A stretch of 64,000 nt of DNA from Macrostomum lignano (lineage: Eukaryota): contig NIVC01003534.1 in assembly GCA_002269645.1 (NCBI GenBank), positions 1-64,000 of the forward strand, read 5' to 3'. The position numbers and the translations under genes were made by a program. Positions within the stretch are counted from its first letter, which is position 1, and the number at the start of each line of letters is the position of its first letter. The notes under the pieces are model-generated. The model did no database searches. It was not told the DNA's origin and saw only the letters and a program-made list of their open reading frames with translations. Shown piece after piece: positions 1 to 28,502 of this stretch.

Positions 1-360
1 TTTCAACCTCCGAGAATTGCTGAAGTGGCTCCAACCGATCACGAAATATGCGTTGTCGATGGAGGCTCGCTGAACTAAATCTATCGCAACCAAAATTTCA
101 TTTCTTTCAATCGTCTAAGGGCGAAGGCAATGCAAAATTAGCTATCAAGACAGCTCTAGAGCAGGCTAGGTTTTGTCTAGTCCAGACTAACTAGTCAAAG
201 CTTTTATGCATACCAAAGTAAGACTAAACTACCATAGACAGAACTAGGTTGTTTGTCTATGCTAGACCGGTCTAAATTTGTGTTTCTGCATACCAAATCC
301 GAGTCCAGACTAGCTTTTCAAGACCGGACTACCCTAGACAGAGCTTTCTGCATACGGCTC
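1..360 (-). mobile_element. 5' end of PIF/Harbinger element (family H1), copy 1
   Basis: Same sequence as 5631-5994; two 1-bp deletions in the transposase N-terminus relative to copy 2; terminal ctttctgcatacggctc (344-360) looks like a Harbinger TIR. Confidence 0.8.
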
Positions 361-444
361 ATTAACATGCACTGTAGTTTTTTGATCCCATAAAGAGGGA
401 GACAGAAGGTTTAAGAGAGCTGAGTAGAAAGACAGCAGATTTGA

Positions 445-1226
445 TTGCTTGCATCTTTCATTTACGCAAACAAAATCGAAATGGCTGACGCAGAGCCAAC
501 TACAATGGCAGAAGTTCTGCCTCCTCTATTTAACTACGGAGCTATGCCGAATGGTGAGATTTCAGGAGTAACATCCGGCGAGTTCGACTTGATTTGCACG
601 TCATTCGATCATGCCCAAGGTCATTAGACAGTCGAGATGCAGCGAACCGCTATAGATTCTCCGAGAAAAGCTGCTAGAGGCTTTCGCCATCTTCTTGAGT
701 TTATGAAGAGCGTCAGTGAGAAAGCAGGCGGCCTTACTAAGGTGTACACCGACCGCTGCATATGGTAGGTAGTTTGACCTGTCCACCATATTCATGTGTC
801 TCTGTGAACACATTTGAATCTAGACAAATCAGTTGCCAACTTTTCTTAAACTGCAGAGTAACTAGAGCGTGCCACCTGGATGCCTGTGGCCAGACTATCC
901 AGGAGATCTTGCTCATCACTGGGCGAAAGTGTGAGCGAACTGTTAAGCGCTACTTATCGAGGCGACGTGATCGCAGTTTGTATAGGGCATCTCTGGCTGT
1001 GGATCAGGCGCTGAATCATACAGTTTCCGAAACTAATGTCAATAAGATCGTTAAGCTAGCTCGTCCAAAATCCAATCACAATAAGCGAGGCTACGATGGA
1101 GGAATGTGCGGATGTTTATCAAGAGCCTATCCAGACCGACGGCGCACTACGTGTGCAGGCTGCTCCGTCAAAGAAGATGAAAGTGACCATTGGCGGCAGT
1201 CGCAATCTGATCGATATTCTTTTTGA
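445..1226 (+). other. Unidentified degenerate ORF region (repeated at 6079-6860), probably a TE-derived remnant
   Basis: Short ORFs 445-627 and 762-1226 with possible splice signals; no family recognised; lies outside the putative H1 TIR. Confidence 0.2.
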
Positions 1227-1393
1227 GTGACGTTTCTGTGTAGGCCTGGTATTAACTGATTAACATACGATTTCTTTGTTGAACAGTTTTTGATGTTTTT
1301 CTAACATAAAAAAATAAAATTTACCCTTTGTTATTGTTTAAATTGCGTTGCGTGTTAATGTCCAAAATGACATTAACACGCATCCCACGCGCG

Positions 1394-1689
1394 TGTTATT
1401 GTCACCAAAAGTGCATAGCAATGGTCTATGGCCGATCTTACAGTTGTATCTAAGTGAGAATATAGCTCGATCGGTATTAAAAATACCTATAAAAATACTT
1501 TTATAGGTACTAAGTATAAATAAAGTGTTAATCTCCGACTTCTTCGATACGTAACACTGGCGACGATTCCGATAGAACCCCTAGAAACAGATGGAGTGAC
1601 CCGATGGCTCCAACGCTTCGATGCTACCGTGAAAGTAAAAAAATGGGCGGAGGATTTGCTAAAGTACGCGTTTGGTTTCCTTTTTGGTT
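1394..1689 (+). mobile_element. Ty3/gypsy family B fragment: LTR (~1394-1556), PBS and gag N-terminus (duplicated at 7028-7323)
   Basis: TGTTA...TAACA ends, TATAAAA and AATAAA inside, TGGCGACG PBS-like at 1558, then VTRWLQRFDATVKVKKWAED similar to the gag start of family A (FQRWLDRFLIASRFYKWTSED); LTR left boundary uncertain. Confidence 0.65.
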
Positions 1690-2583
1690 TGGTTTGGCGG
1701 AACGTTTCGTGCGGACAATTAAGGAGGCCATCAAAGCAAACGGACTCAGTCAAGCAGTTATCGATCGCTACCTGTTGTTCTATCGAGCATCTGGTGGGAA
1801 GAGCAGAGCATCACCCGCAGAACTGCTGTTCGGCAGAAAGATCCGAGCACCACTGCTCTCCAATAGGCCAACCTGGGTACCCGGCGAGCATCTAATCTAC
1901 AAAACCGACCGACGGGCTCAAGAAGCTTCACTAGTTTGCCCAACGGGTTCAAACATGGCCACTATCAAGGTGGGGCCCGATCTGTACAAGAAGGCCCACC
2001 TGGATCAACTCCAGAGGCATAGTCCCATGCAAGTCGATAGTGAAGCAGCAGAGATCAACACCGAGGCTGACGCAGACCAAGCCGCCGGGGCGCGAGCGTC
2101 GGACAGCAGTCAGAACGTCAGCAGAAGCTCCTGTGTCATTTCTGAAGACTTACAGCCGCTACCACCACCCCCCGAGGACTGCGGAACACAGCCCTCACAG
2201 CAGCATCAACAGCTGCTGACGCCTGGTCGGCTGGAACTGACGCCTGAGGAGTTGGGCCCCAGGAGAAGTCGCCGTCTGTGTGGGAAGTCCCGCGTCAACT
2301 ACAAGGTTAGAATGTGCAAGTTCATTTTGTAAAAGAAGGGAGGTGTTGCATACTAGCCTTAAGTATAGAGGCAGAGTTTTATTTATTATTATTGCTACGT
2401 ACGAATAGCCATGTCGAGCCATAGACTCTAATGAAAAGCTATGGCTACAGGTCGTGAAGCAATCCAAGTCGATGAGCTTGGGGATAATAAAACGAGAAAG
2501 ATCAGAGCTGATCATATTTAAGACGAGCCAGACTCGCATACCATCGCTACAATCATCGTGTGTGGCTTCTTCAAGACATAACA
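1690..2583 (+). mobile_element. Ty3/gypsy family A integrase C-terminus, PPT and 3' LTR (2344-2583); inverted copy of 13433-14326; also at 7324-8217
   Basis: GLAERFVRTIKEAIK integrase motif; AAAGAAGGGAGG PPT before TGTTGCA...CATAACA LTR; coordinates mirror 13433-14326 (sum 16016). Confidence 0.93.
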
Positions 2584-3293
2584 CTGCGAGATATGCTCTT
2601 GCAACCACAGAGTCATTCCTTTGCCCGACATGGTGATATCCTCGCTCTGAAGCTGGTTGACAGGCGAAGCTCAGGAACAAAGACTGTCTATCTGTTGGAC
2701 TCCTCTTCAACAGCTGCCAGCTCTTTAGTTAGCCGGGTACTACGCGGTGGTGTGGAGCAGCAGCTGCTGAAGCCCAACTCGGTGTTGCAATATAATCAGA
2801 ACATGGGAGGTGTGGATCAGATGCAGCCGAGCCTTACATCCGCATGTCGCCGAACACATAAATGGTTCGTAAAGCTGGCGGTGTTTCTGCTACAGCAACT
2901 GTTTCGCAACTCATGGATTGTGTACCGACATCTAGGTGGATCCATGAGCTTTCTCAACTACACTGAAAGGTGTGTAAAGCACTTGATTGAAAGCAGTGGG
3001 AATGGTCGATCCAGAGTTAAGCGTCAGGCTCTTCAAGCGACATCCATCACCGGCTGGAAAAGCTACCCGCTACCGCGGCACAAGAACGGCCTACCAAGCG
3101 TTGCCGAGTTTGTTACCAGCGCAGACTGAAAAAGCGGACCGTCTACTTCAGCCAAGGCTGTGACGGTCAGCCTGGGCTTTGCCTGGAGCCGTGTTTCTTT
3201 GAGTGGCACTCGACTAACTGATTGCTGGCGTTTTGCTGAAACTGTAATCGAACTGCTGCTAACATTCTTTTTATTCACTTACATGCAGCTTCA
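2584..3293 (+). pseudogene. piggyBac (PGBD4-like) transposase C-terminal fragment; also at 8218-8927
   Basis: KPNSVLQYNQNMGGVD motif, WFVKLAVFLL, and after a frameshift a Cys-rich tail KRCRVCYQ...GC...LCLEPCFFEWH ending at 3221. Confidence 0.92.
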
Positions 3294-3722
3294 TTTGCCC
3301 ATGAAGGCAACAGAGAGTGCTCGAAGCGATGCAGGCAAAATAACTCAGTACTGTGGATATTGTTGACCTGACAAGCCAAATCGGACAAGTAAAGGACTTC
3401 GTTGCAGGTCAGGCTTCAGTCGTAAAGTCCGCAGGCAGCCTGTCTACGACCACTTCAAGCGGTGCTTGCGAGTCGCATGCTGAAATCCACCACGGTGACC
3501 ACAAGCACCAAAGCTCGCATCACTATTGTCGCTACTGTGGAAAGACCCACGCCGCTGGAAAATGCTCGGCCTTCCGACAGCGGTGCTGCAAATCTAGCAA
3601 GCTCGACCATTTCGCTTTCGTATGTCGTTCCACCCGATCAAAGCCCGTGCACAATGTGGAAGGGACATGGTCCGACACCACTGAGAGACCAAGCAACGAC
3701 AAGAGCACCGATATTCTACATC
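3294..3722 (+). mobile_element. Ty3/gypsy family C gag fragment (truncated copy)
   Basis: Zinc knuckle CRYCGKTHAAGKCSAFRQRCCKSSKLDHFAFVC; identical to 8928-9356. Confidence 0.85.
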
Positions 3723-4680
3723 GATGTGGATAACGTGCTGCAAGTACCTGGTAGTCCAAGAGACTTTTTGGCTCACTATCGGTGTCGTGAGACGCTAGCT
3801 GTCCGGATTGCAGCATGGCATACATGATTTTAGCATTGGCAGAAATCCATTGGCCGACTGTCACAGAGTCTACAGATTTTGGTCTACCGCTCTTGAGATT
3901 CTGCTTAGCTGTCTCACCCTGCGCAAGAAGCTCGTCAACCTGGCCAGGGGCATCAATGAAGTCGCAAATACGGAGCAGCCGCCCGGATGTAACTCTAGCG
4001 TTGCTGGGAGCAAAAATAGCAGCATCAAGTTCACCATCATTGGACCACCTATCAGACTCAGCGCAAGCAGACTGGCTCAAAAATTCTGGTAGCTTACCGC
4101 GATTATCTGGTGCCTTATCCACCGACCGTCGCAGCTCCGCCTCTTCTTTCTGCAGCCTTAGCAGTTCAATGCGCCGTCGGGTGAGCTCGATCTCCTCATC
4201 CAGAGCCGCGCCACCCAAAGAGGTGCCACCCCCCTTGGACCGCCGGCTGCTCCCTCCATCGGACGAGCCGTCAGAATCCCTCGGTGGCTCCCTGTGGGAA
4301 GTCCTGTTCGCGGCGTCAGCAGCTAGACGCTCGTTGAGAATCGCGTCGCACAGACGAGTACGTAGGGCAGCCTTGCTACCTTTTGCTGGCAATTTGCGCG
4401 CTTGCAATGCCGTCTTTAGTTGAGGCACGCTCAGATCGGTGACTGATTGCAGCTGACTAGAGGTGGCCATATTGATTGTGGCTAAGAAAAAAAATCTGAG
4501 CAAACACGAACGCACGGCGAACAAGCGGAGGACCGGACTAAATATGAAATCAAGCTAGCACCCCCGCGACCCCCCGCCCCCCGCAGCACACGCCACCCCG
4601 CATGCACCCGCCCCAGCCAAGCGAGCCCCTCCCCCCGCAGTTTAAACGCCCTTACCACCAACACAGTGGCAAGGGTAACA
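3723..4680 (-). mobile_element. DIRS/Ngaro-like (tyrosine-recombinase retrotransposon) 5' fragment: G-rich leader plus SAP-domain gag-like ORF1 (ATG 4470), truncated at 3723
   Basis: SAP motif LSVPQLKTALQARKLPAKGSKAALRTRL; LRICDFI...VTVGQWISANAKIMYAML...DYQVLAARY pattern typical of Ngaro/DIRS ORF1; reading frame ends at the junction. Confidence 0.65.
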
Positions 4681-5733
4681 TTACATTGCATTGCTGATTT
4701 GGTCTCGAAGTTGATGGCCTCTCCTTTGTCTTTGCTGTTCCCGTTGATTGGCGTTGTAATTAACTAGTTCTGGCTCCGGATCATCCCATTCTGCTGCGAG
4801 ATGCTCAGGAAGATCATCATGAGGATCGTTCTGGGTGCGAGCGAAATTGTGTAGCTTACAACAGGTCACAATTAATGTTGGTACACGGTCTAGTGGTACG
4901 CGTAGGATGCAACCAACGCAGTTGAAACGGCGCTTTAAAATTCCGAATATCTGCTCGATTCGAACTCTCGTTCGGCTGAGTTCGCGATTGAATATTCTCT
5001 GCCGGCCATCTGGGTTTTGATATGGAGTGAGTAGAAAATCGCAGAGTCGGTATCAAGAATCTCCGACAAGATAGCCCTCCCATTGGGCGTCTAGAAGCGA
5101 TCCAAAAAGAAAACTGTTGCGAAATATTCTCGAGTCATGGACTGAACCAGGCCATTGAGCAGTTATTTCGAGAAAGAAGTATCTCGCATCGCAGACTGCT
5201 TGGACTTTAATAGAGTGGTAGTTTTTACGATTAATGAATTCATCTGGAAAGTTCTCATTAGATGGCCTTTGAATTCGTACATGCGTACAGTCGATAGCAC
5301 CGATTACATCTGCCAGTTGACCAATTTGATTAAACCCCGTTGACACTCGCTTCCGCTCAACACCTGGCTCTGGATAGCGGATGTTATTCAAGCGGAGATT
5401 CAGTATCCTGACCACTCTCCAGTAGCAGCGGGACATGGTGCTTTGGTCGATACCTCCAAGAGCAAACAGGTTCTGCTGAAAGCTTCCAGTGTCGAGATAA
5501 GATAGTGTCAGGCACAGCTGTAGCATGGGAGTCAGGCTTCTGTTACGCATTGTCGTCCGTTCGAGATCTGTCTCGACAAGCTCCACAAGTGATAGAAGTG
5601 ATCTAGGTTCGAACCGAAACAGTCTTTTAATTTCAACCTCCGAGAATTGCTGAAGTGGCTCCAACCGATCACGAAATATGCGTTGTCGATGGAGGTCTCG
5701 CTGAACTAAATCTATCGCAACCAAAATATTCAT
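4681..5733 (-). pseudogene. PIF/Harbinger (HARBI1-like, DDE_Tnp_4) transposase with one in-frame stop
   Basis: GAIDCTHV, NRKNYHSIKVQAVCD, WPGSVHDSRIF, GDS*Y (TGA at 5053-5055 where GDSGY is expected), RVRIEQIFGILKRRF, CCKLHNF all in one frame. Confidence 0.95.
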
Positions 5734-8700
5734 TTCTTTCAATCGTCTAAGGGCGAAGGCAATGCAAAATTAGCTATCAAGACAGCTCTAGAGCAGGCTA
5801 GGTTTTGTCTAGTCCAGACTAACTAGTCAAAGCTTTTATGCATACCAAAGTAAGACTAAACTACCATAGACAGAACTAGGGTTGTTTTGTCTATGCTAGA
5901 CCGGTCTAAATTTGTGTTTCTGCATACCAAATCCGAGTCCAGACTAGCTTTTCAAGACCGGACTACCCTAGACAGAGCTTTCTGCATACGGCTCATTAAC
6001 ATGCACTGTAGTTTTTTGATCCCATAAAGAGGGAGACAGAAGGTTTAAGAGAGCTGAGTAGAAAGACAGCAGATTTGATTGCTTGCATCTTTCATTTACG
6101 CAAACAAAATCGAAATGGCTGACGCAGAGCCAACTACAATGGCAGAAGTTCTGCCTCCTCTATTTAACTACGGAGCTATGCCGAATGGTGAGATTTCAGG
6201 AGTAACATCCGGCGAGTTCGACTTGATTTGCACGTCATTCGATCATGCCCAAGGTCATTAGACAGTCGAGATGCAGCGAACCGCTATAGATTCTCCGAGA
6301 AAAGCTGCTAGAGGCTTTCGCCATCTTCTTGAGTTTATGAAGAGCGTCAGTGAGAAAGCAGGCGGCCTTACTAAGGTGTACACCGACCGCTGCATATGGT
6401 AGGTAGTTTGACCTGTCCACCATATTCATGTGTCTCTGTGAACACATTTGAATCTAGACAAATCAGTTGCCAACTTTTCTTAAACTGCAGAGTAACTAGA
6501 GCGTGCCACCTGGATGCCTGTGGCCAGACTATCCAGGAGATCTTGCTCATCACTGGGCGAAAGTGTGAGCGAACTGTTAAGCGCTACTTATCGAGGCGAC
6601 GTGATCGCAGTTTGTATAGGGCATCTCTGGCTGTGGATCAGGCGCTGAATCATACAGTTTCCGAAACTAATGTCAATAAGATCGTTAAGCTAGCTCGTCC
6701 AAAATCCAATCACAATAAGCGAGGCTACGATGGAGGAATGTGCGGATGTTTATCAAGAGCCTATCCAGACCGACGGCGCACTACGTGTGCAGGCTGCTCC
6801 GTCAAAGAAGATGAAAGTGACCATTGGCGGCAGTCGCAATCTGATCGATATTCTTTTTGAGTGACGTTTCTGTGTAGGCCTGGTATTAACTGATTAACAT
6901 ACGATTTCTTTGTTGAACAGTTTTTGATGTTTTTCTAACATAAAAAAATAAAATTTACCCTTTGCTATTGTTTAAATTGCGTTGCGTGTTAATGTCCAAA
7001 ATGACATTAACACGCATCCCACGCGCGTGTTATTGTCACCAAAAGTGCATAGCAATGGTCTATGGCCGATCTTACAGTTGTATCTAAGTGAGAATATAGC
7101 TCGATCGGTATTAAAAATACCTATAAAAATACTTTTATAGGTACTAAGTATAAATAAAGTGTTAATCTCCGACTTCTTCGATACGTAACACTGGCGACGA
7201 TTCCGATAGAACCCCTAGAAACAGATGGAGTGACCCGATGGCTCCAACGCTTCGATGCTACCGTGAAAGTAAAAAAATGGGCGGAGGATTTGCTAAAGTA
7301 CGCGTTTGGTTTCCTTTTTGGTTTGGTTTGGCGGAACGTTTCGTGCGGACAATTAAGGAGGCCATCAAAGCAAACGGACTCAGTCAAGCAGTTATCGATC
7401 GCTACCTGTTGTTCTATCGAGCATCTGGTGGGAAGAGCAGAGCATCACCCGCAGAACTGCTGTTCGGCAGAAAGATCCGAGCACCACTGCTCTCCAATAG
7501 GCCAACCTGGGTACCCGGCGAGCATCTAATCTACAAAACCGACCGACGGGCTCAAGAAGCTTCACTAGTTTGCCCAACGGGTTCAAACATGGCCACTATC
7601 AAGGTGGGGCCCGATCTGTACAAGAAGGCCCACCTGGATCAACTCCAGAGGCATAGTCCCATGCAAGTCGATAGTGAAGCAGCAGAGATCAACACCGAGG
7701 CTGACGCAGACCAAGCCGCCGGGGCGCGAGCGTCGGACAGCAGTCAGAACGTCAGCAGAAGCTCCTGTGTCATTTCTGAAGACTTACAGCCGCTACCACC
7801 ACCCCCCGAGGACTGCGGAACACAGCCCTCACAGCAGCATCAACAGCTGCTGACGCCTGGTCGGCTGGAACTGACGCCTGAGGAGTTGGGCCCCAGGAGA
7901 AGTCGCCGTCTGTGTGGGAAGTCCCGCGTCAACTACAAGGTTAGAATGTGCAAGTTCATTTTGTAAAAGAAGGGAGGTGTTGCATACTAGCCTTAAGTAT
8001 AGAGGCAGAGTTTTATTTATTATTATTGCTACGTACGAATAGCCATGTCGAGCCATAGACTCTAATGAAAAGCTATGGCTACAGGTCGTGAAGCAATCCA
8101 AGTCGATGAGCTTGGGGATAATAAAACGAGAAAGATCAGAGCTGATCATATTTAAGACGAGCCAGACTCGCATACCATCGCTACAATCATCGTGTGTGGC
8201 TTCTTCAAGACATAACACTGCGAGATATGCTCTTGCAACCACAGAGTCATTCCTTTGCCCGACATGGTGATATCCTCGCTCTGAAGCTGGTTGACAGGCG
8301 AAGCTCAGGAACAAAGACTGTCTATCTGTTGGACTCCTCTTCAACAGCTGCCAGCTCTTTAGTTAGCCGGGTACTACGCGGTGGTGTGGAGCAGCAGCTG
8401 CTGAAGCCCAACTCGGTGTTGCAATATAATCAGAACATGGGAGGTGTGGATCAGATGCAGCCGAGCCTTACATCCGCATGTCGCCGAACACATAAATGGT
8501 TCGTAAAGCTGGCGGTGTTTCTGCTACAGCAACTGTTTCGCAACTCCTGGATTGTGTACCGACATCTAGGTGGATCCATGAGCTTTCTCAACTACACTGA
8601 AAGGTGTGTAAAGCACTTGATTGAAAGCAGTGGGAATGGTCGATCCAGAGTTAAGCGTCAGGCTCTTCAAGCGACATCCATCACCGGCTGGAAAAGCTAC

Positions 8701-9356
8701 CCGCTACCGCGGCACAAGAACGGCCTACCAAGCGTTGCCGAGTTTGTTACCAGCGCAGACTGAAAAAGCGGACCGTCTACTTCAGCCAAGGCTGTGACGG
8801 TCAGCCTGGGCTTTGCCTGGAGCCGTGTTTCTTTGAGTGGCACTCGACTAACTGATTGCTGGCGTTTTGCTGAAACTGTAATCGAACTGCTGCTAACATT
8901 CTTTTTATTCACTTACATGCAGCTTCATTTGCCCATGAAGGCAACAGAGAGTGCTCGAAGCGATGCAGGCAAAATAACTCAGTACTGTGGATATTGTTGA
9001 CCTGACAAGCCAAATCGGACAAGTAAAGGACTTCGTTGCAGGTCAGGCTTCAGTCGTAAAGTCCGCAGGCAGCCTGTCTACGACCACTTCAAGCGGTGCT
9101 TGCGAGTCGCATGCTGAAATCCACCACGGTGACCACAAGCACCAAAGCTCGCATCACTATTGTCGCTACTGTGGAAAGACCCACGCCGCTGGAAAATGCT
9201 CGGCCTTCCGACAGCGGTGCTGCAAATCTAGCAAGCTCGACCATTTCGCTTTCGTATGTCGTTCCACCCGATCAAAGCCCGTGCACAATGTGGAAGGGAC
9301 ATGGTCCGACACCACTGAGAGACCAAGCAACGACAAGAGCACCGATATTCTACATC
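5631..9356 (+). repeat. Copy 2 of the segmental direct repeat
   Basis: See copy 1; this copy continues collinearly into gypsy protease/RT whereas copy 1 is joined to a DIRS-like fragment. Confidence 0.97.
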
Positions 9357-10510
9357 TATCTGACGCAGATGCAATCAACTCGATAGAGACCAGGTCTGGA
9401 AAAAATTTCCATTGACGGGGTTTTCGTGCCGATGCAGCTGGAAACCGGTGCATCCGTCAGCATCATCTTGACAAGCATTTGGGACTCGCTCAAGCGTCCG
9501 GCGCTTAAGTTGTTCCACCGCCGCCTTTACGCCTATGATGGCCACCAGCTGAAGGTGTTAGGTACGCGCTCCACCGTCATTGAGTTTTGTGGTTGACTGC
9601 ATCCCGCAGACCTGACTTTTGTACGTGCGTCAAAGTCGTTTGGACTTCTGGGTAGGGACCTGCTGGAATCTGACCAGCTCTTTAATGTGACCTCAGCCAG
9701 CGCCGCAGCCAGGCCACCAGTGAAGACTCTACCGATAATGTAGGGCGTCAAGGCTAAGATGATGCTCATCAAGGGCGCCAGTCCTGTAGCAATAGCTCTC
9801 GAGCATGCTGTCAACGCTGAGCTGGACAGGTTGCAGAAGCTGGGCGTGATCGAGCCAGTTGACGGCCCGGTGAGTAACTCTTCCCTAGTGGTTTGGGTGA
9901 AAAAGAAAGATGGCACTTTGAGGATGTGTGCTGACTACAGTGTGCATGTGAATGCCAAATCCGGTCTGAGGATTATCCAATTCTTAGCGTGGAATGCTTA
10001 CTTGCAAAGCTCAATAATGCGAAGAGGTTCGCCAGTGTTGACCTGCGATCTGCTTACTGGCAGATTGGATTGGACGAAGCGGCCCATAATTTGTCGATCA
10101 TTACAACGTCAAAATGCCTATTCCGCGTTAAAAGACAAATGCCTTATTCATTTTCCAGAGGACAATGGAGAAAATTCTACCGAAAATCCAGAGTCGCTGC
10201 AAAAAAGACTCCGTACCGTTAAGACTAGACTTGCGGAGAAGCAGGTCAGCATCAACGATAAACAGAGGACAAGCAGAGACGCGGGGGCGAAACTGCAGAT
10301 TGGCACATAGACAAGTCGCTAGCTACTGGGATTCGCTAGCCATACGAGCTATATCGTACTATATCAAAAACAAAAGCTTCTGCTTGGCAGTAGAAACTTT
10401 GTAACAACAAATCTATCACTAGAATATACTCGTAGTTGTGTATACAAAGCACTATTTCGGTCTACGACCTCTCTTTTCATTCCAAAAGAATTGTCTATGG
10501 CACATCTTGA
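8928..10510 (+). mobile_element. Degenerate Ty3/gypsy family C: gag knuckle, protease, RT N-terminus, large internal deletion
   Basis: PMQLETGASVSII (DTG to ETG), ELDRLQKLGVIEPV, KKKDGTLRMCADY, FASVDLRSAYWQIGL; RT stops near 10140 and jumps to a post-integrase-like segment. Confidence 0.85.
10308..10497. mobile_element. 190-bp MITE-like insertion
   Basis: TIR TAGACAA/TTGTCTA flanked by the direct repeat TGGCACA (10301-10307 and 10498-10504). Confidence 0.65.
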
Positions 10511-10624
10511 GACTACTGCTTAGCAGAGTAGCAGCTGCGGAAATTTAACAGCGGATATTCATCTGTTTTTTATATAACCAAATTTTAGCAGACTGTTAAA
10601 TATCCGCGGTCAATGTAGCTGCTA

Positions 10625-12366: not shown

Positions 12367-12381
12367 TACTAGCTTACCAGT

Positions 12382-12400
12382 GCTTCATGAAATCGGTCCC
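12382..12400. mobile_element. Harbinger family H2 terminal inverted repeat (orphan end, split from its subterminal part at ~10510-10624 by the Tc1 insertion)
   Basis: GCTTCATGAAATCGGTCCC is 18/19 identical to 20474-20492; TTAGCAGACTG lies ~60 bp inside both ends once the Tc1 is removed. Confidence 0.7.
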
Positions 12401-12638
12401 TGAGAAATCGACCGAATTTGTCTATGGTGAAACCATAGTGATCAAATTTTGCGAAATCCGTTTGGAAAGCATCACTGTATTTTAAGCGTTGCCAATCTCG
12501 AGAGATATTTTTAAATCATATTTTTTTACAAGGTTGAGCAACAACCTGTGACGAAGCGCCTACTTTCGTTATTCTGAAGTCACAAAATAAGATGTGTATG
12601 CTGTATTCGCTACTATAAGTACACAATCTCGCGTCTTT

Positions 12639-12678
12639 AAGAGTATTTAAAGAAATTTAAATTTCTTTAAATACTCTT
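12639..12678. repeat. Perfect 40-bp AT-rich palindrome
   Basis: AAGAGTATTTAAAGAAATTT|AAATTTCTTTAAATACTCTT. Confidence 0.95.
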
Positions 12679-13432
12679 TGAATACTTTAAATACTCTTTA
12701 AAGTAATATTCTTTAATTTTTTTGAAGCTGCATGTAAGTGAATAAAAAGAATGTTAGCAGCAGTTCGATTACAGTTTCAGCAAAACGCCAGCAATCAGTT
12801 AGTCGAGTGCCACTCAAAGAAACACGGCTCCAGGCAAAGCCCAGGCTGACCGTCACAGCCTTGGCTGAAGTAGACGGTCCGCTTTTTCAGTCTGCGCTGG
12901 TAACAAACTCGGCAACGCTTGGTAGGCCGTTCTTGTGCCGCGGTAGCGGGTAGCTTTTCCAGCCGGTGATGGATGTCGCTTGAAGAGCCTGACGCTTAAC
13001 TCTGGATCGACCATTCCCACTGCTTTCAATCAAGTGCTTTACACACCTTTCAGTGTAGTTGAGAAAGCTCATGGATCCACCTAGATGTCGGTACACAATC
13101 CAGGAGTTGCGAAACAGTTGCTGTAGCAGAAACACCGCCAGCTTTACGAACCATTTATGTGTTCGGCGACATGCGGATGTAAGGCTCGGCTGCATCTGAT
13201 CCACACCTCCCATGTTCTGATTATATTGCAACACCGAGTTGGGCTTCAGCAGCTGCTGCTCCACACCACCGCGTAGTACCCGGCTAACTAAAGAGCTGGC
13301 AGCTGTTGAAGAGGAGTCCAACAGATAGACAGTCTTTGTTCCTGAGCTTCGCCTGTCAACCAGCTTCAGAGCGAGGATATCACCATGTCGGGCAAAGGAA
13401 TGACTCTGTGGTTGCAAGAGCATATCTCGCAG

Positions 13433-16400
13433 TGTTATGTCTTGAAGAAGCCACACACGATGATTGTAGCGATGGTATGCGAGTCTGGCTCGTCTTAAAT
13501 ATGATCAGCTCTGATCTTTCTCGTTTTATTATCCCCAAGCTCATCGACTTGGATTGCTTCACGACCTGTAGCCATAGCTTTTCATTAGAGTCTATGGCTC
13601 GACATGGCTATTCGTACGTAGCAATAATAATAAATAAAACTCTGCCTCTATACTTAAGGCTAGTATGCAACACCTCCCTTCTTTTACAAAATGAACTTGC
13701 ACATTCTAACCTTGTAGTTGACGCGGGACTTCCCACACAGACGGCGACTTCTCCTGGGGCCCAACTCCTCAGGCGTCAGTTCCAGCCGACCAGGCGTCAG
13801 CAGCTGTTGATGCTGCTGTGAGGGCTGTGTTCCGGAGTCCTCGGGGGGTGGTGGTAGCGGCTGTAAGTCTTCAGAAATGACACAGGAGCTTCTGCTGACG
13901 TTCTGACTGCTGTCCGACGCTCGCGCCCCGGCGGCTTGGTCTGCGTCAGCCTCGGTGTTGATCTCTGCTGCTTCACTATCGACTTGCATGGGACTATGCC
14001 TCTGGAGTTGATCCAGGTGGGCCTTCTTGTACAGATCGGGCCCCACCTTGATAGTGGCCATGTTTGAACCCGTTGGGCAAACTAGTGAAGCTTCTTGAGC
14101 CCGTCGGTCGGCTTTGTAGATTAGATGCTCGCCGGGTACCCAGGTTGGCCTATTGGAGAGCAGTGGTGCTCGGATCTTTCTGCCGAACAGCAGTTCTGCG
14201 GGTGATGCTCTGCTCTTCCCACCAGATGCTCGATAGAACAACAGGTAGCGATCGATAACTGCTTGACTGAGTCCGTTTGCTTTGATGGCCTCCTTAATTG
14301 TCCGCACGAAACGTTCCGCCAAACCATTACTTTGAGGGTGGTACGCCGGCGTTGTGATCAAGTTGCCACCGACCTTTGTCAGCCATTGACGGGTCTCATC
14401 ACTGACGAAGCTCGGGCCGTTGTCTGACACCAGCTGATTTGGTACCCCTAGTTGAGAGAACGTTCGTCGCAGCCTACTCACAACTGTTGATGATAGCATG
14501 TCTTTCGTCAGGTGTACCTCCGGATAGCCCGAGTAAGCATCCACCAGTATCAGAAGATAACTTCCTTCAATGGGTCCTGCGAAATCCATATGCACTCTCG
14601 TCCATGGTCCTTCCGGTTCGGGCCACGAGGTCCTGAAATTTCTGTTCTGAGGCTTGGCCATTTTACAAACACTGCAGCTCCCGACCTGCAGTTCCACCAT
14701 TTTGTCCATGCCTGGCCACCAGTAGCTCTCCCGAAGCAACGACTTGGTTCGTGCAATGCCGAGGTGCACACTGTGTGCTGCAGAGACCGCTCTACTCCTC
14801 AGCGTCACGGGGACAACCAGCTTGTTTCCTCGAATTACTAAGCCGTCCTGGGTAGAAAGTTCACCAGCTAAAGGTTTGTATGCTCTGACCTCATTTGTAC
14901 GGAAACGTCCTGTCTGGATAGCGTCAACTAGTTTCGTTAGTTCTTGACACTTCCGGATGTGACACCTTAACTCCTGTAGACTCAGCAGAGTTCCTTCGCA
15001 GACAGGGGCGTGTCCGACATGGTGAGTGGTCGCTGTGTTCGTCGGTTTAACCAATCTCGATAGTGCGTCGGATTTCATCTCGGCCGATCTTCTGTACGTG
15101 ATGGTGTAACTGTATCCAGAGAGCGTGATAGCCCACCTCTGAAGACGCGCCGACACACGCTCTGGTAGCTGGCTGTCGTGGTCGAAGATGAAGGTGAGTG
15201 GCCTGTGATCCGTCACCAGCGAAAACTCGCGTCCATTTGAAACCGGTGACAACGACGGACCGCCCACACGATAGCCAGAGCCTCTCGCTCGATCTGCGAA
15301 TACTTCTTTTCTGCTGGTGACAGAACCTTGCTGACGAATATTATTGGCACGCCTTCTTGACTAAGAACTGCTCCGATTGCAACTTGTGACGCATCACACT
15401 CAAGTTCAAGCTGCTTACTTGGGTCATAGGTCGCCAGCATGGTCTCTTCAGTCAGGGCCGCCTTGATCCTTTGGAAGGCGGATTCTTCTGCGTTAGTCCA
15501 CACGAACTCGCTATCCTTCCGCCTCAGCCTTGATAAAGGCTCGATCAGTTCACCCAGATTTCTAATGAATCGACCGGAGAAGTTTATCATTCCTAGAAAC
15601 GATTCCAGTTCGGCGATGCTTTTCGGAGCTGTCATCTCCCGGATGGCTCGAACTTTCTCCTCACTTGGCTTTATTACGCTAGATTCTAAGATGAAGCCGA
15701 GAAAGTGCACGCGGTTCTTCGCCAACTGGCATTTAGACTCGTTGATCTTGAGCTTGTAGCATGCCAGCTGCTTTCTGACCGCCGACTCTCGTTGACTGAG
15801 CTCTTGCTTCGTTCGGCCGCCAATCAGGATATCGTCGACATACGCCACGGCCCCCGGGATGCCTAGAATCACCTCGGAGATAAACCGCTGGAAAATTGAT
15901 GGCGCTGTTTTGATGCCGAAGACTAACCGATTGAAGCGAAAATTCCCGAACGGGGTGGCCATCACTGTCAACACCTTTGATATTTCATCCAGCTCTATTT
16001 GATGGTACGCCTTCTTCAGGTCCAAAATAGAGTAGAAATGACAACCGGTGACAGCTGAAAAAGCCTCCTCTGGGGTTGGCGATGGGTAACTGTTGTTCAC
16101 AAGCTGAGGGTTTACTGTTTGCTTGTAGTCTACGCACAGTCGAATACCGCCATCTGACTTCTGGATGAGTACAATAGGAGACGCCCAGTTAGAAAACTTC
16201 ACGGGTTCAATTATTCCGTCCCTCAGAAGCTCATCAAGTTCTGATCGAAGCTTGTCCTTTAAAGCAAACGGAACTGAGCGTGCTTTCATGTACCTCTGTG
16301 TGGCGTCATTGTTGAGCTGTAGATGCGCCTTGAACCTGGTCTGAGCGTCGATCTCGGGCATCTCCTGTCCGGAATCCAGCACATGTGAGTGCTCAATCGA

Positions 16401-18015
16401 TATTGCCTCCAGGTCAATGTGCACTACATCTCGCCCCAATAAGGCGAAGCTTCTGTTGGATGCCACAACATGGAACGTGACTTGAATCGGACCACCGTTC
16501 CAGACAGCTTGTAGCTCGAGTTGGCCTAGAAGGTCGAACTTATGGTCGTCCGTGTAGCCAATCAGTACAGCTTCACTGGGTTGCAGCCGCGGCTTACCCA
16601 AACTTCTCCACAAGCTGCTCGACATGACAGATACAGTGGCCCCCGTATCGAGTTGACACTGAATCTGCCTGCTTTTACCCTTGATGGAGCACGGCAGCTG
16701 GATGGTCGGACAGGATCCTCCTCTGGTTGAGAGGGTGTTCGCGATCGCCAGGACATCTGCCGTCAGCACGTCTTCAGTCTTCGCTACGTGGTGTTGACTT
16801 CCGACTTTGGATATGCACTGCTTTTCAAAATGGTTCGGCTTGCCGCACTTGCGACAGGTTTTGCCGATGGCTGGACACTCTGATTTATTTTTGTGGTTGC
16901 CGCCGCATCTCGAACACCGGACACTACTAGGAGTAGGAGCGCTGGAAGCATTTGACTTCTTGTCGGTTAGCCTCTTTGGCTTCTGCGGTACTTGTTTTCC
17001 GACATTCATTACTTGCCCTGTCTGAACTGCCCCAGCCAACTGCATTAATTTCGTCTCTTTCAACGCTAGAATCGCCTCCGCTTCTGACACGGCCGTCTTA
17101 AAAGTGAGTTCTTCGTGATCCTTAACTAGTAACTTGGCTATTATTACCTTGTCGTTTAAGCCGAAAATCAACTGATCTCGAAGTCGCTCCTCTCTGTTGG
17201 CAAACAGACACTTGTCAGATGCTTTTAGCAAGCGCTCTGCAAACGCTCTAACAGATTCCGCCGATTCGCGCTTCAGACTCTGAAAAGTGAAGCGTTCGGC
17301 CAAAGCGTATGTCTGTGGTTGCAAGATCTCCTTCAGTGCTTTTTGCAGTTCGTCGAGCTCTTCTTCTTCTTCTTACGTCTTCGAGCTTGGCGAATCAGGT
17401 GACAGATGGTCTGCTAGACTGTCATACAACGCCGGTGATAGCCTCATCAACAAAACTTGGGCCATGTCTTCGCTTGTCCATTTGTAAAATCGAGACGCGA
17501 TTAAGAAGCGATCAAGCCAACGTTGGAACAACCGGCCATCCTCCAACTTCTCGATGTCGGCCATATGAGTAGTCGAACGGTTGTGAAATCCATCGTTGAG
17601 CTGGTAGTTTCCAAACAGCTGCTGACTTTCTCTAACCGGTGACTTGGTAGGCGCCTTTACTTTCGAAGCCTTAGAAGGTTCCTTAGTAACGGTCTTGGCA
17701 GCTCCCATGGCAGGCGACTTGATGGGCGACATGTGGGTACTAGTGTCCTTGCTCATTGTGTGCTTGCAACGCCACTGTTATGTCTTGAAGAAGCCACACA
17801 CGATAATTGTAGCGATGGTATGCGAGTCTGGCTCGTCTTAAATATGATCAGCTCTGATCTTTCTCGTTTTATTTTCCCCAAGCTCATCGACTTGGATTGC
17901 TTCACGACCTGTAGCCATAGCTTTTCATTAGAGTCTATGGCTCGACATGGCTATTCGTACGTAGCAATAATAATAAATAAAACTCTGCCTTTATACTTAA
18001 GGCTAGTATGCAACA
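13433..18015 (-). mobile_element. Full-length Ty3/gypsy LTR retrotransposon (family A), 4583 bp
   Basis: 240-bp LTRs at 17776-18015 and 13433-13672 (TG...CA, 3 mismatches), 5-bp TSD CGCAG (13428-32, 18016-20), TGG-type PBS next to the 5' LTR, PPT at 13673-84. Confidence 0.98.
13684..17756 (-). pseudogene. gag-pol polyprotein of gypsy A with one nonsense codon and one frameshift
   Basis: CCHC knuckles, LDTGA protease, RT (LDLKKAYHQ, YVDDILI), RNase H (CDAS, EREALA), integrase (H-H-C-C, HMDFAG, SDNG, ERFVRT); TAA at 17373-75 in frame; 1-bp loss near 15240. Confidence 0.95.
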
Positions 18016-19589
18016 CGCAGAATCGGTGAAACGCCTCGGTCTTTGCGAACGGTCCCAGTTAAGGTTGTTCCTCTGGTCAGTAGGAACTTGGCCAGTCGCA
18101 CTGATGAAAACCAACTGTCCCAAAAGACCCGATATCCAAGGTCCAGAATGTCGCGACAAAGTTCTACGACGACTCTCTCACTGATTGAGAGCTGCGGCAT
18201 ATTGTTGCCGAACTGTTCATTCGCAATGGTGGTTGAATGTATCAGACAGTTCCACATATAGCCTGTAGAAGACTCTGCAAGGCAGTACATCTTGATGCCA
18301 AACTTGGCTCTCTTGTTGGGCATGTACTGCTTAAAAAGCAGCCTCCCCTTGTAGAGCAGCAGCGCTTCATCAACGGCAATGCTTTGACCGGGCAGGTAGC
18401 TGTTCTTGCAAACTGTCCGGATAATGTCTAGGAACGGCCTGATCTTGCACAAGGGATCATCAGCGTCGAAGTCAATATAGTCATAGCAACGCAGCCATGT
18501 CATGATTTGTTGAAACCGCGAGCGGGGGAGCATCTTCTTGCTTTGAAAGTAGGGATGGAAGTAGAACGGGTCCGTGGACCAGTAAGCCGCCAGCTCCAGT
18601 TTCTGTACAACTCCAGTAAACAGTATAACGCCGATCACCTTCTTCATCTCAGAAACAGTGCAGGGCTTCCACGTTCTGAGCCCGTAGTTCATCATCTCCG
18701 TGTTCTTCTTGAAACTTGGCAATATCCAGCTGCACTCTCTTTTTTGTCCACATGCACATCTGAAGCAGAAAGTCATTGGGTAAAAATTGCTCGAAAATGA
18801 CTGTCCAGCCGTCGTCAACATCAGCGGGTACAGAGAATCCCGAATTGACTCCACTTTCCCCGAGGAACTCGGGGAAGAGAATTAGCTCGAGCATCGGTCT
18901 CTGGAGTTACTGATCGCCAATCATCGTACATCATTCCCTGATCATCTTCCCTCCGGTCCATCGTTGTCTGCTTGATTTTCGCCACCGTCCTCTTCCTCGC
19001 TCTCAGCAGTGACAAATGATTCATCGCTCGACTCATCGCTCGATTCGCTGTCGAGGCCCAAGTTTCGCAAGGCTTGCTTGGCTGTTTGCCGTCGCTGTCT
19101 GACCGCTTGCATTGTAAGATTTGGTAAGCTGGGATGGTGAGCTAAGGAAGCACCAGTAAAAATTCTTGCAGTTGACTTTTCATGCCTGTATTTTCTCTCT
19201 CTTGACTTTTTCTAGCTTGGCCATAGACAATCCTCCAGTCAAAGATGCTACTTTTCCTGTTGAGAAAGTGTTTTCTTGCCTGTGCATAATACAGCAACTG
19301 TTTTGGAGTTCGATGTGTACAGCGCAGAATCAATATTGTCTATGGCATGCATTCTTGCCATCTGGTAAGATAGAAATGTGGGGAAGGAATTCTGTCGTAG
19401 ACAAGTGGTTAAGCTCTGCTCAATGCACGTTAAACATTTTTTATTCCCTAGTATATTTCAATCTCGCGGCTTAGTGACTCGCGAATAGTACACTGTACAT
19501 GTTGCCATAGACAAATGAATAATTGCTCAGCCGTTGACGGCTCTTTCTATTAAAAGTTCGTTAAACTAAAAGTTTTTCTTCAGCTCCAA

Positions 19590-20492
19590 CAATTAGCCAG
19601 TCTAAACAGGGAAATATGCTGTCACCGAGAATGACATATCCTGGAAAAGGTCTCCACTGTTCCGTCTGGAATACTGTAAAAAGACTGCTATTTCACAAAA
19701 TTCTAGCGTCGCTGACGCTGGCCAGCCATGAGGCGTTGCAATAATATAATTAATTACCTGGGCCGCTTACAAGATGGAAGTTCAACGAATCAACGAACTG
19801 GTTCTCGTGTAGCTTCTTTTCAGTGTCCCGTCAACCAATCCACAAACGAACGGAAGTCCGGCGATGTCATAAAACTTCTGCGCAACGCCAAGCGGCTCAG
19901 GCCATGCAACGAATTCGTGGAAAAACTCGCCGTTGATAGCTGCTGTAACATGCATCACGACGCGCGTCACTGTCGCTCCAGAAGGCCCATGCGCATCCCG
20001 GAGAACGTGATAGAAACTGTTGATTGCATAAAACCTGTGTTTGCTCACGGGCAGTCAGGCTTCCACTTCTCGGGGCGTCGTATTCCAACTGCGGGCCAAT
20101 ACGCTCCATCGGAAATTCAAACCTTTCTGGATTCACTCGGAAGCGCTGCTTGAAGTCATCACCGGCGTCGTAATTTACGCGATTATTTTTGAGCTCTCTC
20201 GGCCGACGATTATCGACCGGGATATCAGCTAATTGAAGCGCGTCAAATAGTGGAATCTCCATCCCTAGCCGCCTCTCGAGTATGCTAAACTTTAGCAGTT
20301 AAAGTTGTGTCCTTTTAGCAGAACTGAAACCGCGAACTAGCAGTCTGCTAAAACCAAGCCTTTGGACCATAGACATCGCTCAGAAACCCCTCTCTTCCGA
20401 CTGCTAGGCTCGTGAAGCCAAAAGTTAGCAGACTGGCAAAAATCTGTTTGGGACTGCTAGACTAATAAAACCAGCTTCATGAAATTGGTCCC
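19590..20492 (-). mobile_element. Degenerate PIF/Harbinger element (family H2): TIR 20474-20492 and broken transposase from ATG 20262
   Basis: FKQRFRV, VCGLVDGT, SVSDARIL, VILGDSIFP motifs in shifting frames; 3' part lost. Confidence 0.8.
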
Positions 20493-22503
20493 TAGAGAAT
20501 TGCTGCAAAGTCGCAAAGTTCCACAATTTTGCGGGCCGCACGGCCCTCAGAATCGTCGGTGTCTGCCAGTGATTTAGTCTATGGCATTTTTATCAAGTGT
20601 AGAAAATAATAATTTCAACAGTATAGTTATAACAGTATAAGTCAGCATAATAACAAAAGAATGTTTATAAACAGAAGCAGTTAGTTCGCTGTTGCTATGC
20701 CAAAAGGCTTTAGTGTTAAAAGTTAGGTTTAGTCTTTGGTTCAAAGTACCGCAATAGTACTTGTAGAGCTGTAGCTCTGAGACCGTAAGTAAGAACTCAG
20801 GCTTCGAGTCCCTAACTCTATTCCTACTGACCTTGAGCTTCTGCTCAAACTCAGAGAAAATCCTCAAAGTTTGAGGTGGAACTCGCAAGTTTTTACTCAC
20901 TTTATTCATAAGGCCTATTGTCCTTTGCATCCATTTTGTGATGAACCGGGGGAAGAATCCCAAGGCTCCCCGCCTGACCCGGGTTCGTGTACTGATCCTT
21001 AGCGCTACGGTCGTCCAACCTACCCGCGTACGACGCAGAGTCGGTTGGGATCAGGCCAATCGAGCGTACGACGTACGGTGGCCTCCAGTTAAGCAGACGA
21101 CGCTGAGCTGGTTGGGGTGGGAATCGGCGTACGACGCTATCTATCCCGGCTAAGCCCTAAACATGCAAACCCCGAAAAGACAAAGACAGAGTGCTCACGT
21201 TTCGCTTGCGGAATGGCCCAGGCCAGGCTTGGCTGTTGGCTCGACTCCGAGATGCAGATCGCCACTATATTTGTGCAGTCGCAAAGCAGATACAAACTCA
21301 ATCGCAGAGTTGCAACAACAGAGCAGTCGCGAGAGCAAGGAAAACAAGGGCCGCAGAGGCCTCATATAGGCAGGCATAATACGGGGGGGGAGGCGCCAGA
21401 CAGAAAAGCCCCGGGGCTTGCAGCCAATCAGAGAGCGCCAACTGGCCCGCCTGCGCCGATGGGAGAGTACATTGCAAAGGCTGGGGAGGGGTTGAGAGAA
21501 AAACAAGTGGGGCTACTTCAGAACGGGTTTCCGCCAATCAGAAGCCGGGGGCTGACGCAAGCGTCAGGGGGTGGGGCACATAAAAAATAGCGAACGAAAA
21601 AGAGAAGGTCAGGGGGGCTTGATAGAGTACACAACAGGGAGGGCTACACAACCAAAAAGGCAGGCGGGGAGGGGCGCATTCATCACAATTAATTAGCTTA
21701 ATTTTCAATTCACGCACTTGATAAATTACAAAAGAGCTACAGAGGGAACCAGAATGATCCTACCTAGAATAAAAAGTACAGATCATACTCTTAGAAAATC
21801 ACAAACTCGCTGCCAGCAAAGCAAGTATCCATCTGGCGCCTGATCCACTGGGATGTCGGCTCCGGTGAGCGACGATGAAGGATAAAAAAGCGAGATAGGG
21901 CGGCAGCCGGTGGCCGTGCAGGTGGCCGGGGGGCCGAACCGCCTGCCTGCCTACCCGGATCTCCTGCTGCGCGGCTTGGCGCGAGCGGCAGACAATGGGA
22001 ATGGTGGGGGGGGGGCGGTGCCGGCAAAAAGCCGGTGCTGTGGGATGAAAGGACTGCAGCTGGATGTGGGCAAAAAAGCAGACCTTTGATTGCTGCTGAG
22101 AAAGTGGTTCTCAGTGCAAATGGATTCGCTGCAGCAGTAAAATTCTGAGGGCCGCAGATTCAATGCAGCCCCGCGGGCCTCAAGAGCCGGAGAGAAGGAC
22201 CCGGACAGTCAGCTGAAAGCTTTGCACGAAACGGCACGTTTGGAACTCGCTTTCCTCACAGATTTTTGCCTTTCTTCATTTTCCATTTACCGTCAGGCAG
22301 GAGACAAAATGGAGGGCGCTGAGACAATGGTCCGATGCGGGAGGGGCGATAGAGAGGAAGCGGCGGCCGAGCTGAGTGAGCCTTTTGCTCAGAAAAGCCG
22401 GCGGGCAAATCGGAAAGCAAAAAAAGCGAATTGAGTTGGGGTTTGGGATTTTCTGACTTGCGATGTGGATATGGGCTTGTCTCAGGCTCTGATGGGTCTG
22501 TAG

Positions 22504-24389: not shown

Positions 24390-24962
24390 TCACATGCTGC
24401 CGATGGCACTTGAGTGCAGCTCGCCTGGGCTGCCGGGCTCCAGCTGGTGGTGATGGCTCTGATGGTGGCCATTGTGCATGCCATAGTGCGCCTGCTGCAT
24501 GTACATCATGTGCATCTCACCGGACCCAACTGCTGGCGACTCCCGCTGCTGATGGGGCTGATGATGATGATGCTGGTGATGCTGGACCGGACTAGAACTC
24601 GGACTGCCGCACTCCTGTTTGCCAACCAGCAGCTGGTAGACTCCATCACCGCCAGCCTGCTTCTGCATCTGTCCGCCTCCTCCGCCGTGGTGCTGGCCGC
24701 CAACCAGCATGCCGTAGCCGGTGGGCGGAGAACCGGGCGGGTAGCCGCCGTAGACAGCGGAGCCACCGCCGCTGTACGGCCCCATGGACTGCTGAAGGTA
24801 GCCGCCGTACTGCCCCATGACAGCCTGCTGGTAGTCCGTCGGCCCGCCGTGGTGCAGGTACTGCTGGGCGGCCATGTAGCCTGCCGGGCCGCTGTACAAA
24901 TCTCTCGGCAAAGCGGAGTTCGCCGCCGTCATGCCCTGCTGCGGACCTCCAGCGCCGCCGCC

Positions 24963-24994
<32 letters not shown>

Positions 24995-25418
24995 TGCTGT
25001 AGCGGTCCTGCCGTTTCAGCAGGGTCTTGGTCTTGCGCCGCGGCCTGTACTTATAGTCCGGATGGTCCTTCATGTGAATGGCGCGCAGCCGCTTGGCCTC
25101 GTCGATGAAGGGCCGCTTCTCGGTCTCGCTGAGATTCTTCCACTCGATGCCAAGCCGCTTGCTGATCTCCGAGTTGTGCATCTTCGGATTCTCCTGCGCC
25201 ATCTTGCGGCGCTGGCCCCGGCTCCACACCATGAAGGCGTTCATCGGCCGCTTCACCCGGTCCTCCTTCTTGCCGCCAACGCCTGCGCCGCCGTGGACTG
25301 GAGGTCCTTCATGGTGCTGATGCTGATGCTGGTGATGATGAGGCGGAGGCGGCTGCTGTTTGTGGGCCGGCGACATGACAGATGGTGCGCTGTTGTTATT
25401 GCTGCTTCCGGGAGTCAC
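24390..25418 (-). CDS. SoxB1: SoxB1 (Sox1/2/3, SoxNeuro-like) HMG-box transcription factor, HMG-containing exon (first internal ATG 25376)
   Basis: [38 protein letters not shown]...[15 protein letters not shown] (group B1 homology tail); KQE..PSSSPV motif resembling SOX2 KSEASSSPP. Confidence 0.97.
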
Positions 25419-25535
25419 CTTCAATGATTTTTTTTAACGGAAAAAGTCCGAGTAAGACGCAGTGAAGAAGACGTAGATTTTAGACTTTCGTTTTTTTATT
25501 AATGATCATGGAATATACTGAGCCTTTGTACCTCA

Positions 25536-28037: not shown

Positions 28038-28502
<465 letters not shown>

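Follow-up and report, generated by a model that had tools for sequence, protein, structure and literature searches.

The 64-kb stretch of Macrostomum lignano DNA analyzed here (contig NIVC01003534.1, positions 1–64,000; hereafter the window) starts with a nest of real transposons that makes up its first 21 kb, and the elements of this nest share one short DNA word, CCATAGAC (GTCTATGG when read on the other strand). Harbinger H1 has its body on the minus strand at 3532–5742, with an open reading frame (ORF) for the N-terminal part of the transposase at 5053–5742 (DDE_Tnp_4) and a second one, which contains a SAP domain, at 3532–4524. Harbinger H2, diverged from H1, lies on the minus strand at 19618–20262, where an N-terminal ORF (19897–20262) and a DDE remnant (19618–19803) were identified. 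An H2-like terminal region, X1 (10400–10622 and 12369–12722), is interrupted at a TA dinucleotide by a TA-flanked Tc1-like element (10625–12366, plus strand), which encodes an intact DDE_3 transposase of 352 amino acids (ORF 11033–12091). The N-terminal part of a piggyBac transposase is found at 18003–19113 (minus strand, positions 21–241 of the DDE_Tnp_1_7 profile) and its C-terminal part at approximately 13100–13414. Inside this piggyBac gene sits a gypsy-type retrotransposon (gypsy-1; 13430–18016, minus strand), with the order protease, reverse transcriptase, RNase H and integrase (PR-RT-RNaseH-IN) and with long terminal repeats (LTRs) of 244 bp at 13430–13673 and 17773–18016.

Parts of the nest are duplicated. 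Positions 1–3722 recur at 5631–9356 with 99.8% identity, and a block of 1,604 bp is present in three copies (1690–3293, 7324–8927 and, inverted, 12723–14326). A composite of the gypsy 3′ end, its LTR and a C-terminal piggyBac fragment is found three times (within 1–9356 and at 12723–14326), the copies being 99.8–100% identical, while a unit of 5.6 kb is duplicated in tandem with copies that differ mainly by changes in homopolymer length. This suggests either very recent segmental duplication or redundancy in a long-read assembly.

Both forms of the word were searched as an exact 8-mer over the whole window. This yielded 19 matches, all within 232–20584, which start at positions 232, 1424, 2419, 5864, 7058, 8053, 10493, 10725, 10830, 12259, 12268, 12420, 13590, 17933, 19221, 19338, 19505, 20367 and 20577; no exact match is present in the remaining 43 kb (20585–64000). 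The sites are the same as those reported in the first-pass annotation of this DNA, which had likewise seen none in the rest of the window. Shuffling this DNA by dinucleotides over its full length gave a mean of 1.63 matches and a maximum of 6. To account for duplication, the duplicated segments were masked, as was one of the two copies wherever a Tc1 arm unit is repeated, leaving 15,658 nt. This collapsed region holds 11 independent matches, in line with the earlier count of about 11, whereas 1,000 dinucleotide shuffles predict 0.32; roughly 0.6 had been estimated before. The Poisson probability of the collapsed excess is 7e-14, or 2e-9 after multiplication by all 32,896 possible 8-mers, and the word tops the counts of 7-, 8-, 9- and 10-mers in this region. 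Variants with one mismatch occur at background level (approximately 14 observed, approximately 11.5 expected), with a mild excess only for variants of the first base, and the word is therefore sharply defined.

Alignment of the sites shows a G directly before the word in 9 of 12 cases and a tendency for A-A-T to come after it, giving an extended consensus of approximately GCCATAGACAAT. The exact 12-mer GCCATAGACAAT occurs at 10493, 12259, 19221 and 19338, that is, in three different elements. It had been claimed that the preceding base is always a purine and the following base almost always A or T; the former holds except at 12268 (C), and the exceptions to the latter are 1424 and 7058 (C in both). 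Beyond approximately four extra consensus bases (approximately 12 shared in all) the flanks differ between families, and a sensitive self-BLAST of the site contexts detected no similarity except for the known duplicates. The word is present in either orientation across the elements. Five sites, out of 11 independent ones, have a CTATG(G) half-site in inverted form within 25 nt, where approximately 0.5 would be expected, with spacing and polarity that vary from site to site.

When the unique sequence was divided into 13 annotated segments, the word was found in all seven non-coding transposon control segments (12 matches in 4.4 kb), namely the H1 5′ end, an unclassified stretch at 366–1689, the gypsy LTR, the piggyBac 5′ region, H2, X1 and the Tc1 arm, and not once in the ORFs and bodies of the transposons, which amount to 12.1 kb. 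Among all 8-mers and 9-mers it is the one common to the largest number of annotated segments. On the coding strand GTCTATGG lies 131, 105 and 108 bp upstream of the ATG of H1, H2 and piggyBac, respectively (ATG at 5733, 20262 and 19113, all on the minus strand), in agreement with the distances given before except for piggyBac, where 109 bp had been stated. The carriers had been described as six unrelated families. Several of them are indeed unrelated, but they belong to four superfamilies, as the two Harbingers are distant relatives.

In H1 the word lies in the 5′ subterminal repeat, at 232–239 (plus strand) in the first copy of the duplicated 5.6-kb unit, where an inverted GTCTATG follows 15 nt downstream, and at 5864–5871 (plus strand) in the second. 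H2 has one word in its 5′ region (20367–20374, plus strand), another near its outer 5′ end (20577–20584, minus strand, sense orientation), and a third in its degenerate body, just outside the putative piggyBac end (19505–19512, plus strand). X1 carries a word on the minus strand at 10493–10500, as TGCCATAGACAAT, and one to the right of the Tc1 insertion at 12420–12427 (minus strand), within CTATGG-TTTCA-CCATAGAC. The piggyBac 5′ region contains one copy in each orientation: 19221–19228 on the plus strand, in the context of the 12-mer, and 19338–19345 on the minus strand, in sense orientation approximately 230 bp upstream of the ATG and within the 13-mer TGCCATAGACAAT. The ends of the piggyBac element could not be fixed; TTAA-CCACTTGTCTACGAC at 19397–19416 is a candidate, for which no matching 3′ end was found, and this putative end carries GTCTACGA, which is related to the word.

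The gypsy-1 LTRs each hold one word in sense orientation, between the TATA box and AATAAA. In the 3′ LTR it occupies 13590–13597 (minus strand; LTR positions 77–84) and in the 5′ LTR 17933–17940 (minus strand), approximately 50 nt downstream of TATAAAGG and approximately 60 nt upstream of AATAAA, with an inverted CTATGG 12 nt downstream. The copies of this LTR in the duplicated gypsy 3′ end with the piggyBac fragment account for the words at 2419–2426 and, in the second duplicate, 8053–8060 (both plus strand). The remaining site, at 1424–1431 (minus strand; duplicated at 7058–7065, minus strand), lies in the unclassified non-coding stretch, with an inverted CTATG 5 nt away. This stretch may be an LTR, as it ends in ...AACA followed by TGGCGACG and has TATAAATAAAG approximately 90 nt downstream. 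The first-pass annotation had placed the word in two families of gypsy LTR, but the second (approximately 1330–1556) could not be confirmed as an LTR: it is present as a single copy, TGGCGACG resembles a primer-binding site, and the ORF downstream of it is fused to a fragment of the gypsy-1 integrase. A perfect hairpin with a 13-bp stem (GCGTGTTAATGTC-CAAAAT-GACATTAACACGC, 1340–1385) is found approximately 45 nt upstream of the 1424 word. Between the H1 end and the unclassified stretch there is also a possible spliced gene at 481–1226 (plus strand), with an ATG at 481, a GTGAG donor at approximately 555 and an ORF of 154 amino acids (762–1226) that has no Pfam match.

The arms of the Tc1 element are approximately 130–155 bp long, contain AAAGCCATCCAAWGTGAGAATC direct repeats, and carry words that point toward the gene. 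In the left arm (10651–10883) there are 2.2 tandem copies of a 105-bp unit, in which the word and TATAAAGG are combined with a direct repeat and a GC-rich palindrome, so that this arm has one direct repeat and one word more than the right arm. The first unit has its word at 10725–10732 and the second at 10830–10837 (both plus strand), 308 and 203 bp upstream of the ATG, and in both TATAAAGG comes directly after the word. The right arm contains the palindrome GTCTATGGCCCATAGAC (12259–12275) with two words of opposite orientation (12259 and 12268), which is the GTCTATG-NNN-CATAGAC structure noted earlier. Tc1-like elements such as Sleeping Beauty are described in PMC5224488 as having an inverted repeat/direct repeat (IR/DR) architecture. 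In the element studied here the repeated unit is AAAGCCATCCAAWGTGAGAATC, and the word falls between these units and is missing beside the outer one. It was accordingly rejected as the direct repeat bound by the transposase in an IR/DR arrangement, since it is not repeated at the outer and inner position of each arm.

Comparison with relatives covered the Tc1 and Harbinger H1 elements. Relatives of the Tc1 protein were found on short contigs from unrelated sequencing runs and metagenomes. A copy with 99% identity (L001, Logan SRR24204725) carries the word. More informative are diverged relatives from four other samples, with 48–62% protein identity to Tc1: all four that reach the region (L003 from JGI, L004 and L008 from ENA, L006 from Logan) keep CCATAGAC. 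The word again points toward the gene and lies between direct repeats of GAGAAT type; in L003 both arms bear it, and L008 contains two copies. Aligned on the word, these sites have nothing else in common, and their surroundings cannot be aligned. Two further relatives (L002 and L007) were left out, as their contigs end before the region, and a distant one (L005) is without the word. A metagenome scan with the Tc1 alignment returned one irrelevant relative of 37% identity, genome and viral scans returned nothing, and the palindrome pattern was not found in viral contigs. L003 (positions 130–235) has a tandem repeat of its own, (ACTACTCATAGTAGTAGCAGTGC)x4, outside the word-bearing arm, which shows that internal repeats are acquired again and again by arms of this lineage.

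For H1 the picture is mixed. Its word is part of the subterminal repeat of the family, a unit ACTACC[A/C]TAGACAGA that occurs three times, in both orientations, near the 5′ end (232, 255 and 332). L012, from the same sequencing run as L001 and 81% identical to H1 at the DNA level, has three homologous subterminal repeats, two of which contain the word, though not the ones that bear it in the window. Repeat A reads GTCTAGGG in the window and GTCTATGG in L012, repeat B GCATAGAC and CCATAGAC, and repeat C GTCTATGG and GTCCTAGC, respectively. The more distant relatives L009, L010 and L011 (59–42% protein identity) come from AT-richer hosts (GC content 0.35–0.41) and are without the word, and their homologous repeats (L009 and L010) read CTACC(C)TAGAT, of CCCTAGAT type. 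The H1 word is a single substitution away from this CCCTAGAC/CCCTAGAT-type family repeat and represents one state of the repeat unit of the family itself. In H2, the subterminal repeat is a different word, TAGCAGNCTG. Presence of the word thus differs by host, from two copies in L012 to none in the Harbinger relatives of AT-richer hosts. Taken together, loci of similar GC content (L001, L003, L004, L006, L008 and L012) contain 9 matches in 11.9 kb, all of them non-coding, against 0.36 expected, and the AT-richer loci contain 0 in 26.6 kb.

Outside the nest, the window contains an intronless gene of SoxB type (24390–25424, minus strand), which encodes a protein of 344 amino acids with an HMG box and a SOXp domain in locally GC-rich sequence (approximately 58% GC). 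The proteins closest to it in the databases are SoxB proteins of arthropods, with approximately 60% identity, and none of the ORFs of the window was found in the protein collection searched. From 22504 to 63997 there are approximately 25 different short tandem arrays with periods of 4–42 bp and GC contents of 35% to 62%, spaced 0.5–2 kb apart. They include three very pure microsatellites, (CTAT)x116 at 28038–28502, (AGAC)x114 at 35326–35783 and (GTTA)x242 at 48109–49076, and a 15-bp array at 50940–52645 (unit GGGTTAGATTGGGAT) with GGGTTAG and TTGGG units that resemble telomeric repeats. The center of the word, ATAGAC, is what results when AGAC is overlapped with ATAG, the reverse complement of CTAT, which may be coincidence. 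No RNA gene was detected in the window with Rfam.

We favor, at a probability of roughly 0.45, the reading that the word is an orientation-independent cis-element and the putative binding site of one sequence-specific, probably host-encoded protein that is used by unrelated transposons. The excess of the word is non-random, the word is restricted to control regions, its flanks are unrelated, and it is strictly retained in diverged Tc1 lineages. The position shortly before three transposase start codons, the differences in presence among hosts, the background level of one-mismatch variants and the precedent of heat-shock elements in a flatworm speak for this reading as well. At least five coincidences on one exact 8-mer, and partly on one 12-mer, exclude chance, and the unrelated flanks exclude common descent of a module, so that a common cause is needed. 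We infer that this cause acts through binding by a protein, that the protein is encoded by the host, and that its effect is positive. As the word was kept through approximately 50% divergence of the Tc1 protein, it would benefit the element rather than serve as the site of a repressor. In the proposed mechanism a single sequence-specific protein, most parsimoniously host-encoded, would bind the word in promoters and subterminal control regions, and elements would keep the word because it helps them. Its most likely role would be to drive or permit transcription of the element, as an orientation-independent promoter or enhancer element; less likely, it would recruit a DNA-bending cofactor for transposition.

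The first-pass annotation had offered a DNA-binding-factor site, acquired convergently by class I and class II elements, as one of two explanations. The factor site remains the reading that best fits the control-region location, the unrelated flanks, the use of both orientations and the retention in Tc1, with host encoding and germline specificity as its conjectural parts. Convergent acquisition is borne out only in part: in H1 the word is a variant of the family's own subterminal repeat, which in distant relatives reads CTACC(C)TAGAT. At least part of the pattern can therefore come about when a repeat that the family already had is slightly altered, and convergence on a host site would look like this. 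The same pattern fits an element-encoded binder equally well, and the probability is therefore held at the value given above.

Several further observations weigh against a shared host factor. The H1 repeats toggle among CCATAGAC, CCCTAGAC and GCATAGAC, for which an element-encoded binder would suffice, and the lineage-wide retention in Tc1 could equally reflect the conserved helix-turn-helix (HTH) domain of the element itself. The position of the word relative to TATA boxes is inconsistent (immediately upstream, approximately 90 nt upstream, or approximately 50 nt downstream). All evidence within the window comes from one transposon nest of 20 kb, and SoxB, the only host gene in the window, is without the word. 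In the literature searched the word is not mentioned as a motif, and its sole co-occurrences are primer sequences.

One way to dispense with a host factor is to regard the word as the site of a transposon-encoded protein of a single family, either the N-terminal HTH of the Tc1 transposase or the SAP-domain second protein of H1, which the other elements would have come to carry through cross-talk or hitch-hiking. That the word stays strictly conserved across the Tc1 lineage although the direct repeats change is what such a site would show, as is the embedding of the H1 word in the ACTACC[A/C]TAGACAGA unit, which is homologous to repeats of distant relatives, and the HTH of Tc3 transposase recognizes a similar sequence of CCTATAGAAC type. 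We nevertheless consider this rather unlikely, given that the Tc1 word lies outside the direct-repeat unit and is absent beside the outer direct repeat, that H2 has a differing subterminal repeat of its own, and that the word is also present in the gypsy LTR, which needs no transposase; we know of no mechanism by which a retrotransposon would gain from the site of a DNA transposase. It is less probable again that the word is an independent, element-intrinsic site in each family and that the identity is a coincidence, helped by ancestral repeats such as CCCTAGA. The single substitution that separates the H1 word from the CCCTAGAC/CCCTAGAT-type repeat and the related GTCTACGA at the putative piggyBac end are compatible with this, but it demands at least five coincidences on the same 8-mer, several of which extend to the same 12-mer (corrected probability 2e-9), and drifting look-alikes would lead one to expect an enrichment of one-mismatch variants, which is not seen. 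Chance, base composition or an assembly artefact is effectively refuted. Three segment copies with 99.8–100% identity do raise the count from 11 to 19, and the differences between copies are changes in homopolymer length of the kind that long-read errors produce, but the excess survives collapsing and recurs in independently assembled contigs from seven samples.

The paired arrangement of some sites bears on two other explanations, both of them very improbable. The words could be termini, footprints or preferred targets of a small mobile element, such as a miniature inverted-repeat transposable element with a GCCATAGACAAT inverted repeat, that lands in transposons; this corresponds to the second explanation of the first-pass annotation, termini of a CATAG...CTATG element family. 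Opposite pairs do exist, for example 19221/19338, which bound 125–127 bp with a perfect 12-bp inverted repeat, and the inverted CTATG half-sites within 25 nt at 5 of the 11 sites point the same way. The intervals between opposite pairs, though, share no similarity or internal sequence, there are no target-site duplications around any pair and no empty sites, and no word is found at the mapped junctions (1690, 3293, 3722, 5631, 9356, 12723, the Tc1 ends and the LTR ends). In addition, copies and relatives (the paralogous copies and L012) differ by substitutions and not by presence or absence of a unit, and the Tc1 relatives conserve a single word only, so that this proposal was not supported. 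With slightly smaller probability still, the functional unit could be a short hairpin or a cruciform (CCATAG...CTATGG) that acts on RNA or on single-stranded DNA, for instance in small-RNA biogenesis or strand transfer, as might be suspected from the same excess of inverted half-sites over the approximately 0.5 expected. Yet the pairs are arranged both tail-to-tail and head-to-head, 1–17 nt apart, a partner is missing at six sites and in every Tc1 relative, the invariant part runs past the paired part, to GAC, and Rfam found nothing in the window.

A number of other readings of the word were considered and rejected. As a start-codon context (GTCT-ATG-G) it opens reading frames of only 4–20 codons. 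As a splice site or introner end (GT...AG) it shows no consistent pairing, and the Tc1 arms are of opposite polarity. An RFX X-box and a Sox/Oct composite site resemble single sites only, and no mapped breakpoint coincides with the word as a recombination junction would.

Several LTR-retrotransposon families in M. lignano independently acquired heat-shock elements (PMC12801592). This is the nearest documented case, in that it likewise concerns a short factor word in the promoters of unrelated families of one animal genome, with transcription as the presumed gain. In that case the motif and the heat-shock factor are known, mutation demonstrated the function, and the elements concerned are all of the LTR type; the word described here is absent from the literature searched, spans Tc1, piggyBac and Harbinger as well as an LTR element, and is found inside terminal inverted repeats. 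More generally, documented uptake of host-factor sites by transposons mostly concerns one class (LTR and endogenous retrovirus families) and known motifs. Host-factor sites in retroelements include those for Su(Hw) in Drosophila gypsy and for YY1 in LINE-1, MLV and IAP. These too are zinc-finger sites of the host in 5′ control regions, but they are restricted to a single family or to class I. The YY1/Pho core GCCAT equals the first five bases of GCCATAGAC; a YY1/Pho site (consensus GCCATNTT, GCCAT followed by N-T-T) was nonetheless rejected, as GCCAT is present in 9 of 12 sites but the next bases are invariably A-G-A. In fission yeast the transposon-derived CENP-B homologues Abp1, Cbh1 and Cbh2 bind the LTRs of Tf2 and repress the elements. 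There a sequence-specific protein reads a short word in the control regions of transposons throughout the genome, much as proposed here, but the outcome is repression, whereas the retention of the word in Tc1 through 48–69% protein divergence argues for a benefit.

Two parallels concern single superfamilies. Sleeping Beauty has an extra half-direct-repeat enhancer (HDR) between the repeats of its left arm only, which resembles its own direct repeat. The Tc1 word is comparable as a conserved extra element that lies, in long arms, between the outer direct repeat and the inner one, and it differs from the HDR in being unrelated to the direct repeat, present in both arms, and common to other superfamilies. 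In PIF/Harbinger elements, subterminal repeats are bound by a Myb-like second protein. The H1 word likewise lies inside a unit of which three copies, in both orientations, are found close to the 5′ end, but H2 has a repeat of its own that differs, and the same 8-mer recurs in elements that are not Harbingers.

Here one exact word recurs in control regions of a gypsy LTR, both Harbingers, piggyBac and Tc1, and diverged relatives of Tc1 keep it, which would point to one factor on which very different mobile elements converge. We regard it as doubtful, though worth stating, that a lineage-specific, high-information word of approximately 12 bp, read by one host protein that is possibly itself derived from a transposon, is the shared "entry ticket" by which retrotransposons and three cut-and-paste superfamilies gain expression or mobility, kept through approximately 50% divergence of the Tc1 protein across several host samples. 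To isolate the factor, GCCATAGACAAT would be a ready-made probe. If the reading is true, one factor would be required by unrelated mobile elements of this animal clade and could serve to control them, and such a factor would be a natural handle to understand or switch transposon activity in this lineage.

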